From positions 1,364,001-1,428,000 of the forward strand of contig CBFDEM010000053.1 in the NCBI GenBank assembly GCA_965603825.1: 64,000 bases of DNA, read 5' to 3'. Shown one piece after another: positions 53,238 through 57,779 of this stretch. Within the stretch, counting starts at the first letter, position 1, and the number at the start of each line of letters is the position of its first letter. The position numbers and the translations under genes are program-made. The stretch comes from Blepharisma stoltei ATCC 30299 (lineage: Eukaryota > Protista > Ciliophora). The notes under the pieces are model-generated. The model was given only the letters and a program-made list of their open reading frames with translations, ran no database searches and was not told where the DNA came from.

Positions 53238-54020
53238 ATGCAGTCACAGTGGATTGAAGCGAAAATTTCGGATACTTGGGATCATGATCAAGCTACGAAA
53301 CGTCATAAAGATCGATTAAATGAAATCAAAAACAAATCTTCTAATCGAATAGACAACTCCCCGCCTACAACTCGTCAAATTATGCAGCATAAAGCGAAAT
53401 CTCAGTCATCATTAGATCTCAAAAAATGCAGGGAAATTGATAGAGAAAACGAAAAAATTATGACGAGAATTAGCCAAATTATCACTGATAAACGGTATAA
53501 TTTCTCATTTAACCCTGCGGCTGGGCCTAATACGCTAAATAGTGTAAAAAGAAAACGAGAAGCTGAAAAAATTGCAGTTGAGAATGAAAAATTAATTAAA
53601 AAGATCCAGGATTTGCAGTCAAACCTAAATAAAAAGAAACTCTTAGGTGACTACCAGAACTTTGTCAAATACAGTCAGCAAATGTCGAAGTATTGAAACA
53701 AAAAGAAAAGTTACCCCAAATTTGAGGGAAAACCAAATCGGTTACCACCTTTAGAAAACCTCGATAAAAATACACATAATTATTCTCCTGATGTCAAAAA
53801 AGGACTAAAAAGATATGCAAGCGAGAAATCATTTAAATTGAGACAGAGTGAAGCAACCCCGAAAGGTGTGAAATCCGAAATCCAATCGGCTAATAGAGAG
53901 CAGGAAATTATAAAAGAAATTGATAAAGAAAACTTAAAAGAATCTGATAAAAATAAAGAAAACGAGCAGGTGATTGCAAATAGTGATGAAAAACAAGAAG
54001 AAGGTAACGGTTTGGTTTAA
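53238..54020 (+). CDS. CFAP97/KIAA1430 (Hemingway)-domain ciliary protein (260 aa)
   Basis: HKDRL..IK...IDNSPP, EIDRENEKIM.RI, TLN...RKRE..KI..EN..L.K.I. Continues through TGA 53694 into the in-frame ORF ending at 54020. Confidence 0.75.
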
Positions 54021-54187
54021 AGGTTAATTCATTGATTTTTAAATCTTGGAAATTTAATATAAAAAATTGCCTATAAATGCAAATAAAAGAAGATCATTTA
54101 TATATAAATAGGCATAAGAGCGCATTATTAGAAGACTGTGCCGGTTTGTCTATTTAGTGCCAAAGTATTTATTTTATTTGAATAGAG

Positions 54188-55342
54188 TTAATAAATTGCA
54201 TGGGTTGATTCTCTTAACAATTCTTGATACTCTTGCGATTTTTGAAACTCAGGGTAAACAGTTTCATTGAACTGCTTAAAAATATTGTTTTCAACGTCAT
54301 TAAACATTGATGCACTAATATCAGGATTCATATCTCCACAAAGACTTTGATTAGACAAATCCAAAGTCATGCTTTCAGCGAAATTATTTTTCCCTGCTAA
54401 AAAGTTGCTATATATATCATAAGCTTTTTCTGGATTTGGATCAAGCTTAAACAGATGAATTTCTACAAGGATTTTCAAATAATATTCCCAATGCTTATTT
54501 TTTGATTTTTTTGCAAAGGAGACAAAGTAATTAAAAGCTAGCTGATCTTCTAATAAAACTCTTGGGCTTTTAAGGACTTCCAAAGGAACAATACTAAGTC
54601 GTTTTGTGCTTCTCTGTAGAAAAAAAAAGGTGTTAATTAGCATGCAAAGATTTTTTGAAGGGATAATATAAAAGTGGAAAAATAAAGGACTTACAAAAGG
54701 TGCAGTTAGCCCCATTGACCATATGACTAAAATTAGATATAGCTCAGCTTTCAAATTGCAGTAATAAGGAATTTTCCTAATTTTTAATAAAAAAATCAAA
54801 TAGCAGGCATCTTCAAAAAGAATCAAAAAGTTTCAAGATATATCAAAAATCATATTCAGCGCTCCACCAGTTTTGGTTATCATTTGATATAAAGCAAAAG
54901 CTATATAAAATGCTGAAATCGGCAACGAATAAGCTAAAATAATTTTTATATTCCACTGATTTCCAAGCCTTTTTTTACTATTTAAATAATCTAAATAGCT
55001 ACAGTAGTTGCCATTCCTGATCCTGTTTAATAAAACCAGTCTATACATTCTCAGCACATTTGAGATGAAGTAAGCATTATGAGAAATTTCATAGATGACA
55101 AAAATTCAGGTGCAGACCTTTAAATTATAATACAAGCCCAAAATCTCAATAAATCCTAAAGAAATTGAACCAATGTTTTCAGTGCCATTGACTATTATAG
55201 AGAAAAGCAAAATTCCTGCAGACCTTGAATATATTTCTTGAAAGTCTCTACGATGAAATATATATCACAAACAAAAACTATATATCCCAAAAATAGTAAT
55301 AAAGATGCTTAATCATACAAGGTAAAGCCATGTTCCTGTCAT
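54188..55342 (-). CDS. 7TM-RGS protein, copy 1 (384 aa)
   Basis: ATG 55342, four TGA=W. Seven hydrophobic segments with RR...I.SRS after TM1. C-terminal RGS-like fold (LLED...F..F, A.DIY..FL, F..VE..I......YPEF..S..Y). Confidence 0.8.
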
Positions 55343-55367
55343 TAATTAATTAATATTTACAAAGAAT

Positions 55368-56513
55368 TTAATAAAGAGAGTTTGTTTCTTCTAAAAGTGA
55401 TTGGTATTCAGGCGAATTTTTGAATTCGGGATAAATAGTTTTTTCTAGATGCTTTAAAATAAAAAATTCTATTTCATTAAAAACACTATTTGTTATGTCT
55501 TTTGGATATTTTACAAGGTGTCTTTCAGCATTTCTTGACACAAATTCTGGAATAATATCATTATTTCGTAAAAAGTCATTATAAATCTCTTGCCCTTTTT
55601 CAATTGATGGATTTAGCTTAAATAAGCTAATATTGATAAGAAAATCCAAATAATACTCTCATGTTTTATTGCTCGAATTTTGGGTAAAAGCCTTAAAAGA
55701 CTTATAAGCAGTAAAATCTTCAATGAGAATTCTTGGGTCTTCTAAAGTTTGCAATGGCAAAATCATGCTCATTTTAGAATGCCTGCCAAGTGTTACTAAA
55801 ATCCCTACTAATAAAGTGATATTTCTAGAAGGCACAATATAAAAATGATATTCTAAATTCGTTGTGAATGGTGCTAGTAAGCCTAATGCCCATATAAAAA
55901 TTATCATATACAACTCATATTTCAAATTCGAACAATACTTCACTTTGCGGATTTTTAATAGAAAAATTAAATAAGTGGTTTCTTCAAAAAATATCAAAAA
56001 GTCAAAGAGGATATTATAAATCATGTTCATGTCTCCTTTATCACTTGAAAGCAATTGATAAAGAGCAAATCCCACAAAAATCGAGGAAAAAAAAATTGTG
56101 TAAATTATTATGAACTTCGCGCTTCATTTATGGTCAAGCCTAACCTTCCTTCTCAAATATTCTCCATGGCTTTCATATTCACCATTTCTTATTTTGTTCA
56201 GCACATTCAGTCTGTAAATTCTCATGACGTTTGATATAAAATGTGCATGATGAGCTAACTCATAGACAATGAATACAATTAATACAGCTTTTATTTCATA
56301 ATAAAACCCGAGTTTATCAACGAAACCTAATGAAATTGAGCCAATCATCTCTATACAGCTTGCACACATCGTCAAATATAAATTAGGTAATGATCATGCG
56401 AAGATTTCTTGAAAGTATTTTTTATGATGTATATACAAGGCACAAATCAGATAAAAGCCTATTAAAATTAATAGCAAAAATGCTCATAAAAGTCCGAGGT
56501 AAGTGGTTTCCAT
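55368..56513 (-). CDS. 7TM-RGS protein, copy 2 (381 aa), tandem paralog
   Basis: ATG 56513, TGA at 56484, 56394, 56124, 55659. Collinear with copy 1 (IGSISLGF, FISNV.R.YRL..LN.IRNG.Y, NLK.ELY, HFYI.PS, WEYYL, YPEF). Confidence 0.8.
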
Positions 56514-56558: not shown

Positions 56559-57779
56559 ATGTGGATTTGATTACTTTTTTTTCAACAAGTTCAAGCTGAT
56601 GAATTTATAACAACAGGCTTGGGCACAGAAGTTTATATAACTTATTCCCTAGTGAGTTTGCTTCTGATTTCTATCTCTGGGCTTATGTCGGGCCTTACTG
56701 TAGGTCTAATGTCAATAGATGAGTTAGATCTAGAAATGAAATTAGCATCAGGAACCCCTACGGAGCAAAAGCAAGCCCGAAAAGTCCTCAGTATTATAAA
56801 TCATCATCATTTAGTTTTAGTAACTCTGTTATTATCAAACGCTGCTGCTATGGAAGCCCTCCCAATTCTATTAGACACAATGTTTAGCAAAATTATTTCC
56901 ATCATTTTGAGTGTGACTTTTGTTATGATTTTTGGTGAAATTCTTCCCCAAGCTGTTTTCACTGGCCCTGATCAACTTAACATTGCCTGCAAGCTAATCC
57001 CTGTAGTTAAAATAATCACTGTTATATTATTCCCGTTTAGTTACCCAATAGCTAAATTATTGGATAGATGCTTTGGAGCAAACCATGGAGGAAGAAGATT
57101 ACAAAATAAAGACATTAAAGCCCTTGTAGCGCTGCATGAAAATGATGTAATTGAAGAGTCTGGGGCAACCTCAGTAACTGGGTTGGTCTCTGGCCAAATA
57201 AAAATGATTCATGGCGCTATTGATTTACGAGAAGAAGTTGTAAAAAATCATATGATACCAATTGAAAAAGTTTTTTTCCTATATGAAGATACAGTATTGG
57301 ATGAAATTACTATCAATCGTATACTGAAACAAGGATATTCCCGAATACCTGTATACTCCTCAGAAAATAAGCAGAAAATAAAAAATGTGATGCATGTGAA
57401 AACTTTACTGTGTGCTGAGCATGGAAAAACTATACAGGAATCAGGAATAAAGCTGAGAGCTCCTTTAAGTGTGTCGCAAAATACAACTATGTATGAACTA
57501 TTGGGGAAATTTAGAGAAGGGAAAATGCATATGGCTATTGTGAGTGACGAAAAAGAGGTTAAAGGGATTATTACGATGGAAGATGTGCTGGAACAGATTT
57601 TGAAGACTGATATTTTAGATGAAGACGACTATGATAAGCTTACAAGCTTTCTTGCTGGAAATCTTGTGCAAAACAAACTTTCAAGCCCACAAACAAGAAC
57701 CACAAGACAGAGAAAAAGATTATCAGCTCTGCATCCGAGATTTGATGAATTTTCTATGAGCACAATTTCGATGGCTTAG
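56559..57779 (+). CDS. CNNM/CorC-family (DUF21 + CBS pair) metal transporter (406 aa)
   Basis: True ATG at 56559 (MWIWLLFFQQVQA, signal-like, TGA at 56568). SGLMSGLTVGLMS, LVTLLLSNA..MEALPI, FGEILPQA, GYSRIPVY, HMAIV, GIITMEDVLE. Confidence 0.9.

Follow-up and report, generated by a model that had tools for sequence, protein, structure and literature searches.

Proteins in which a seven-transmembrane (7TM) domain is followed by a regulator of G-protein signalling (RGS) domain are widespread in bikonts and occur in some fungi (PMC3971589). In the plant and Trichomonas members (Arabidopsis AtRGS1 type), a 7TM domain with a short N-terminus precedes a cytoplasmic RGS domain in a protein of about 380–460 amino acids. 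This is also the arrangement of the proteins encoded by two adjacent genes, designated here genes A and B, of the ciliate Blepharisma stoltei. The genes were analyzed within a window of 64,000 nucleotides, C53:1364001–1428000, of the macronuclear genome (41.46 Mb, 64 contigs); positions below are those of the window. Gene A occupies 54188–55342 and gene B 55368–56513, both on the minus strand. A and B are probably tandem-duplicate, receptor-like proteins that combine a class-C-type 7TM domain with a tethered RGS domain and act without G-alpha, the RGS domain likely being a docking module.

The described systems closest to A and B differ from them in several respects. The AtRGS1-type proteins serve a cognate G-alpha that activates itself, and their action depends on the Glu and Asn contacts (PMC3386157, PMC11061236), whereas in B. 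stoltei no G-alpha was detected and the contacts are replaced. Plants have one RGS copy, whereas B. stoltei has about 20; in plants, no RGS gene is kept where G-alpha is missing (PMC11061236), and loss of coupling is followed by deletion of the RGS gene (PMC3386157). Fungal class VI G-protein-coupled receptors (GPCRs; GprK/GprR and MoRgs7) have a domain order identical to that of A and B but keep the Glu-Asn dyad, are active as GTPase-activating proteins (GAPs) in yeast, and act through G-alpha (PMC10794492). In GPR158 and GPR179, a class C 7TM bundle is likewise brought together with an RGS domain, and GPR158 recruits RGS7-Gbeta5 (PMC8611064). Unlike GPR158, A and B have no Venus-flytrap or other ectodomain, and their RGS domain is fused, not recruited; RGS7 is also an active GAP for G-alpha-i/o, contrary to what is predicted for A and B. 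By analogy, GPR158-RGS7-Gbeta5 may be the nearest functional counterpart, made permanent by fusion in A and B.

Axin, SNX13/14/25, GRK2, and D-AKAP2 resemble A and B in that the RGS fold is kept and the canonical contacts are not, and in these proteins the domain is a docking module. They are, however, soluble or single-pass proteins of G-alpha-bearing organisms, and in none of them is the RGS domain joined to a 7TM domain of the GPCR type. Thecamonas trahens has an RGS gene of no obvious function in a genome without G-alpha (PMC3971589), but this is a single gene and not an expanded 7TM-fused family. Thus, neither the combination of 7TM and RGS nor an RGS-homology domain without GAP function is new in itself. 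An earlier reading made from the DNA sequence alone (the sequence-only reading) had proposed this locus as a candidate for an undescribed system, which was an overstatement because RGS-homology domains that do not serve G-alpha had already been described in Axin, SNX13/14/25, and GRK2.

RGS fold and G-alpha-contact positions

The RGS-homology domain of gene A comprises residues 260–383 (54194–54565, minus strand; Pfam match 262–375) and that of gene B residues 254–380 (55374–55754, minus strand; Pfam match 268–372). Against a cut-off of 23.9 bits, the Pfam RGS profile PF00615 scored 35.9 bits on the stop-free piece of gene A and 34.3 bits on its full-length public record, P0002; the corresponding scores for gene B were 32.2 and 33.4 bits (record P0003). 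AlphaFold2 models, made from an alignment of 30 family sequences, had a mean predicted local distance difference test (pLDDT) score of 86.5 for both proteins, with predicted template modelling scores of 0.72 and 0.69 for A and B, respectively. Both models consist of seven long transmembrane (TM) helices and, after them, a helix bundle of the RGS type. Superposition of this bundle on RGS4 complexed with G-alpha-i1 (1agr) gave a TM-score of 0.81 by target and a root-mean-square deviation (rmsd) of 2.0 Å over 122 columns; for RGS1, RGS4, RGS9, and RGS16 the TM-scores were about 0.7–0.8 by target, and for these together with RGS8 the rmsd values were 2.0–2.8 Å. Axin, SNX13/25, and GRK2 were weaker structural matches, and R4/R7-type RGS domains outscored the sorting-nexin ones in both sequence and structure. 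The RGS fold assumed in the sequence-only reading was therefore borne out by a score above threshold and by superposition on RGS4, RGS1, and RGS9.

As a separate observation, the two final helices of the gene A RGS domain (residues 339–378 of P0002, approximately 54209–54328, minus strand) found their best sequence match in the PDB in the "death-associated protein" of the Tetrahymena mitoribosome (6z1p chain Bw, residues 294–334, E 0.004), the HPEF of which corresponds to the YPEF of gene A. The HMMER envelope on this chain, approximately 214–338, has the size of an RGS domain, and an RGS-like insert may therefore be present in this mitoribosomal protein.

Asn128, Asn88, and Asp163 of RGS4 are the three critical G-alpha contacts (PMC8252600). 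GAP activity depends on the Glu87-Asn88 dyad both in human RGS4 and in the 7TM-RGS proteins of fungi (PMC10794492), and E313 and N357 of plant SmRGS, described by the authors as G-alpha-interface equivalents, are required for both GAP activity and binding (PMC11061236). The corresponding positions were located in an alignment of the RGS parts of 19 B. stoltei paralogs and near-canonical relatives, with P0050, which carries SSEN, VNLD, and DSYPRF, as the reference. In this alignment, A and B both have WEYY in place of SEEN, and DSYPRF is replaced by TVYPEF in A and by TIYPEF in B, as the sequence-only reading had seen by eye. In gene A, Tyr287-Tyr288 (54479–54484, minus strand) stand at Glu87-Asn88 of RGS4. 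TVYPEF (54245–54262, minus strand) stands at DSYPRF, with Thr361 in place of Asp163 and Glu365 in place of Arg167. At Asn128, HMMER places Thr326 (54365–54367, minus strand) and MAFFT places Ser324. The gene A codons for Tyr-Tyr, Thr326, and TVYPEF were confirmed on the DNA itself. Gene B has Tyr at both Glu87 and Asn88, Ser or Phe at Asn128, Thr at Asp163, and Glu at Arg167. The claimed loss of the VN(L/I)D-loop Asn also held, because neither HMMER nor MAFFT aligned an Asn there in A or B; the exact aligned residue is ambiguous, with the loop alignment uncertain by two residues and the model pLDDT at 57–73.

The loss extends through the family. Glu87 is kept in 0 of 9 members of the A/B subfamily, Asn88 in none of the 19 paralogs, and Asp163 in one of the 19. 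Arg167 is kept in 0/19, its place being taken by Glu, Asp, Lys, Gln, Ala, Ile, Leu, Met, or His. At Asn128, one other paralog (on C5) has Asn by MAFFT, and several rows of subfamily II are gapped. The contact positions differ freely between paralogs, in contrast to core positions, among which the Phe and Ser of YPxFxxS scarcely vary. When RGS7 and RGS6 were aligned pairwise by HMMER, the SEEN register was four residues off; it was rejected in this form because it needs a gap in helix alpha4; the gap-free register is common to the RGS2 alignment and to the family members with near-canonical motifs. The distant 7TM-RGS relatives P0036, P0028, and P0041 retain Glu(-Asn) and Asp/Glu..Arg, and the loss of the contacts therefore belongs to the heterotrich genes and not to the architecture.

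G-protein components in the genome

A six-frame search of the whole 41.46-Mb genome with the Pfam G-alpha profile (PF00503, cut-off 48.8 bits) yielded nothing above the cut-off, the best score being 35.6 bits. The best matches covered only profile positions of about 160–264, in frames of about 180 amino acids, and the top ones were rejected as G-alpha because they scored 134 bits as Arf versus 40 as G-alpha. Where both the P-loop and the switch segments were matched, the two lay about 10 nt apart, which leaves no G-alpha helical domain in these Arf-like matches. The sole match in the helical region was a weak one in a 653-aa frame on C30, which proved to be midasin, an AAA ATPase. Neither G-gamma (PF00631) nor Ric8 was found in the genome, in searches made without a positive control. 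The only plausible G-gamma candidate in 120 kb of C11 scanned for short open reading frames (ORFs) with a CAAX-like end was a 116-aa coiled-coil ORF ending in CAIQ (C11:239210–239560, minus strand), and it was set aside for want of Pfam support for G-gamma or any other family.

Ciliates have been reported to possess G-beta, phosducin-like genes, and an expanded set of arrestin-domain proteins, but no G-alpha (PMC3971589). The B. stoltei genome, with no detectable G-alpha by profile search, fits this published picture, and the absence of G-alpha presumed in the sequence-only reading was upheld, with Arf and midasin as the best matches. The genome contains one phosducin-like gene and, in line with the reported arrestin-domain expansion, at least 24 genes with an arrestin-N domain. 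Three of the latter are clustered at C53:1336487–1344684, about 20–28 kb before the start of the window, and five at C11:842081–853909. Since G-alpha is absent and the residues that would grip and activate it are gone, the RGS domain of A and B is most likely no GTPase activator for a heterotrimeric G protein.

Membrane domain, gene family, and locus

The 7TM domain of gene A comprises residues 1–247 (54602–55342, minus strand), with TM helices at 2–30, 42–68, 74–110, 128–156, 160–188, 195–216, and 219–247, and that of gene B comprises residues 1–248 (55770–56513, minus strand), also with seven TM helices. With TM1 beginning at residue 2 and outer loops of 2–6 residues, the extracellular segments of both models, N-terminus included, measure 1–8 residues; because these segments are so short, there is no ectodomain, and no large extracellular ligand-binding domain was found in either model. 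In an exhaustive structural comparison, the membrane part matched GABA-B best (Z 20.6, rmsd 3.3 Å over 236 residues), followed by GPR156 (Z 19.9) and GPR158 (Z 19.8); mGlu1/2/5 gave Z values between 18 and 19, and class A receptors 17.5 or less. The top twelve matches (Z 18.1–20.6, rmsd 3.3–4.1 Å, 215–236 residues) were all class C membrane domains, except for one designed GPCR-like fold at rank 7. An atlas structure search was concordant (GABA-B, TM-score 0.77). On the models, the membrane domain of A and B is thus closest to a class-C-GPCR-like fold. The likeness to Arabidopsis RGS1 drawn in the sequence-only reading accordingly is one of architecture only; the membrane domain here is class-C-like (7tm_3).

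The Pfam profile 7tm_3 (PF00003, cut-off 33.5 bits) did not match A or B themselves. It matched the paralog at C57:710934–711596 with 37.3 bits, above the cut-off, and those at C3:327093–327845 and C34:173942–174703 below it. In a search of the whole genome, paralogs of the 7TM-RGS family were the sole matches; 2 of the 30 aligned family members were matched, and the matching paralogs all belong to subfamily II. All 30 aligned members share Arg101 at the inner end of TM3, and at least 90% of them conserve Glu200 at the start of TM6. Class C GPCRs have an ionic lock that a pair of this kind, a TM3 Arg and a TM6 Glu, resembles, and by analogy the Arg101-Glu200 pair recalls it.

A search of the genome with a family profile identified 19 full-length paralogs, in which nearly the whole profile was matched, and one partial copy. 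The translations of all 19 have an identical 7TM-plus-RGS layout in about 381–433 residues. The partial copy (C57:73761–74480) has the membrane part only (profile positions 9–247), contains seven TGA and two TAA codons, and has longest frames of 195 and 161 aa; either it has become a pseudogene or tiny introns interrupt it. A quick maximum-likelihood tree, the support values of which come from a quick method, divided the family into two deep subfamilies and placed A and B as sisters (88 by the Shimodaira–Hasegawa-like approximate likelihood ratio test), with a paralog on C29 next to them (99). The sister relationship supports a local tandem duplication. The tandem pair of the sequence-only reading thus stands as a pair of adjacent sisters, but it is not a lone pair, being part of a family of about 20 genes that extends to Stentor.

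Outside B. stoltei, a profile search of 1.84 billion representative proteins gave only 50 matches at E ≤0.001, consisting of the B. stoltei paralogs, one Stentor coeruleus protein, and metagenome or transcriptome proteins. Word-index protein searches gave only the B. stoltei proteins themselves or metagenome relatives. The Stentor match carries only the annotation "RGS domain-containing protein," as do the B. stoltei proteins in databases. No identified plant protein was among the 50 matches, which came from a protein library without names. By language-model features, the nearest atlas clusters were RGS proteins of 400–470 aa with labels mostly from Ciliophora, and other similar clusters came from chytrids, oomycetes, and zoopagomycetes. 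The zoopagomycete cluster has 7tm_3 plus RGS; the nearest clusters of that composition, from chytrids and zoopagomycetes, are near by feature similarity and not by alignment. The taxon range beyond Blepharisma and Stentor is that given by uncultured-eukaryote sequences and atlas cluster labels. In S. coeruleus, the mRNA of the RGS-domain gene SteCoe_31006 was among the three most posterior-enriched messages (PMC13291615).

Both genes are intronless. The frame of gene A opens with ATG at 55342 and, after 384 codons, closes with TAA at 54188; that of gene B opens with ATG at 56513 and closes, after 381 codons, with TAA at 55368. Between the stop of B and the start of A lies a spacer of 25 nt (55343–55367), and no RNA-type contig spans it. 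A and B are 44.5% identical over their full length. Each gene has exactly four in-frame TGA codons, read as Trp, and no other internal stop. In gene A they lie at 54833–54835, 55106–55108, 55265–55267, and 55313–55315, and in gene B at 55659–55661, 56124–56126, 56394–56396, and 56484–56486, all on the minus strand. Two of the gene B TGA codons, including that at 55659–55661, align with TGG-Trp codons of gene A, which supports the reading of UGA as Trp. Coordinates, frames, Pfam, and AlphaFold2 therefore agree with the two intact paralogs, 25 nt apart and with four UGA codons each, that had been described beforehand. The upstream neighbour (53238–53696, plus strand) encodes a protein with a Hemingway/CFAP97 domain, a cilia-linked family, and the downstream neighbour (56619–57779, plus strand) is a CNNM/CBS-domain gene, magnesium-transporter-like.

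Four public runs from one study contain the locus. Transcript-like contigs cover 54153–55332 of gene A (minus strand) in the four runs, with no joint and with the TGA codons unchanged, and 55503–56503 of gene B (minus strand) at lower depth, with its 3′ end uncovered. The contigs end at intergenic spacers, neighbouring genes are on other contigs, and no contig joins A and B. Adjacent genes at the locus differ more than 10-fold in depth; the contigs of the CNNM/CBS neighbour have about 10 times the depth figure of the A/B contigs in 4/4 runs, these figures being per-contig means and not expression values. The pattern fits transcripts of two separate intronless genes but is not proof of transcription, because the contigs show neither strand nor transcript ends. 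Runs X2 and X4 carry 19 single-base variants over A and B (54860–56430) that are absent from X1 and X3, and two strains or alleles were probably present in that study. Gene A has five synonymous and one non-synonymous variants and gene B seven and six, respectively. Because non-synonymous sites outnumber synonymous ones by about 3:1, both genes look constrained, A more than B.

Probable role of the RGS domain without G-alpha

A G-alpha-independent role of the RGS domain in the A/B family is well supported because G-alpha is missing, the contacts are lost family-wide, and the genes are kept with apparent transcription and constraint. A receptor function, a docking function, and any partner of A and B are what we infer beyond this. 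The 7TM part would sense a small ligand or a membrane state and would relay a conformational change to the tethered RGS-homology domain, which in turn may dock or scaffold some non-G-alpha partner, like the Axin, sorting-nexin, and GRK domains. Repurposing of the RGS fold for such a partner would be the natural interpretation. Of the orphan receptor with a repurposed RGS domain that the sequence-only reading had put forward, the 7TM-RGS architecture, the absence of G-alpha, and the loss of the contacts are real, and the repurposing is the part that goes beyond the data.

Several points count against a G-alpha-independent docking role. Active RGS proteins of the RZ type have Ser or Thr at the Asn128 position. 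Glu87 is retained in 6 of the 10 members of the other subfamily, and Lys, a conservative change, stands at the Arg167 position in seven paralogs. The absence of G-alpha was judged with one Pfam profile on a macronuclear assembly, and a very divergent G-alpha-like GTPase would escape such a search. The RNA nature of the four runs is the guess of a tool, although contig ends and depths track the gene boundaries, and no partner for the RGS domain of A and B was found. Older pharmacology proposed G proteins for Blepharisma. For Stentor, G proteins were proposed in a PCR study (Marino et al. 2001), as far as its citation in PMC9960496 conveys.

A first alternative is that A and B are not receptors, the 7TM domain being an anchor or transport-like module and the RGS domain working in membrane traffic or organelle contacts, in the manner of SNX13/14/25 or the Rab-binding D-AKAP2. 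The extracellular segments of 1–8 residues would suit such proteins, the RGS domains of SNX13 and SNX25 are among the sequence and structure matches, and the posterior localization of the Stentor RGS-gene mRNA (PMC13291615) hints at a structural or regional role. We nevertheless consider this alternative unlikely, as the membrane domain matches GPCR bundles across all seven helices with Z of about 20, the invariant TM3 Arg and the TM6 Glu are kept, and canonical R4/R7 RGS domains match better than those of sorting nexins.

It is also quite unlikely that A and B are still receptor-GAPs, acting through a re-evolved interface on a cryptic, divergent G-alpha-like or Arf/Arl-like GTPase. The intact RGS fold and core, the many Arf-family genes with weak scores on the G-alpha profile, the Glu87 and Lys residues of the paralogs noted above, and the Stentor G-protein fragments of the PCR report would all be in keeping with such a GTPase. 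No match with a helical domain or at the G-alpha cut-off was obtained, however, and the contact positions vary freely among the paralogs, unlike a conserved catalytic interface. RGS catalysis moreover needs the cis Arg and the G-alpha-specific switch geometry, which are missing in Arf GTPases.

That A and B are functionless relics decaying after the loss of G-alpha is highly improbable, because, against the drifted contact residues that differ between paralogs, the six non-synonymous versus seven synonymous strain variants of gene B, and the TAA-containing partial copy at C57:73761–74480, there stand 19 intact full-length ORFs, a family conserved to Stentor and beyond with two ancient, separately expanded subfamilies, transcript-like contigs over both genes, a 5:1 synonymous excess in gene A, and conserved core RGS and TM motifs.

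No account of a ciliate 7TM-RGS protein or of a Blepharisma RGS protein was found in the literature searched, and a mention in older surveys is possible. In a census of ciliate GPCRs, RGS goes unmentioned and class C receptors are reported to be lacking (PMC9960496), and the Stentor study names one RGS-domain gene only in passing (PMC13291615). The 7tm_3 match above the cut-off in B. stoltei corrects the census on the point that ciliates have no class C-type receptors (PMC9960496). RGS domains and G-alpha normally co-occur, and B. stoltei retains about 20 GPCR-RGS genes without G-alpha. The RGS fold stays in these proteins while its G-alpha-binding face is dissolved, and A and B appear to be transcribed. 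The family makes it possible to study, in a natural setting, what an RGS fold and a GPCR-type receptor are capable of when no heterotrimeric G protein is present. It also bears on the old pharmacology-based claims that G-protein signalling operates in the responses of Blepharisma and Stentor to light and touch.

Beyond the docking role favoured here for A and B, we tentatively suggest, as a possibility well short of probable, that heterotrichs have a G-alpha-free pathway in which class-C-like 7TM receptors signal through the tethered RGS domain to a non-G-alpha partner, with the family of about 20 genes as the main sensor set. The ciliate G-beta (PMC3971589), phosducin, small GTPases, and arrestin-domain proteins are candidates for the putative partner. 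If such a pathway exists, the 20-gene family would be a sensor set for stimuli such as light-avoidance cues, mating pheromones, or food cues, and its signalling would be a kind of output that is new both to the RGS fold and to receptors of the GPCR type.

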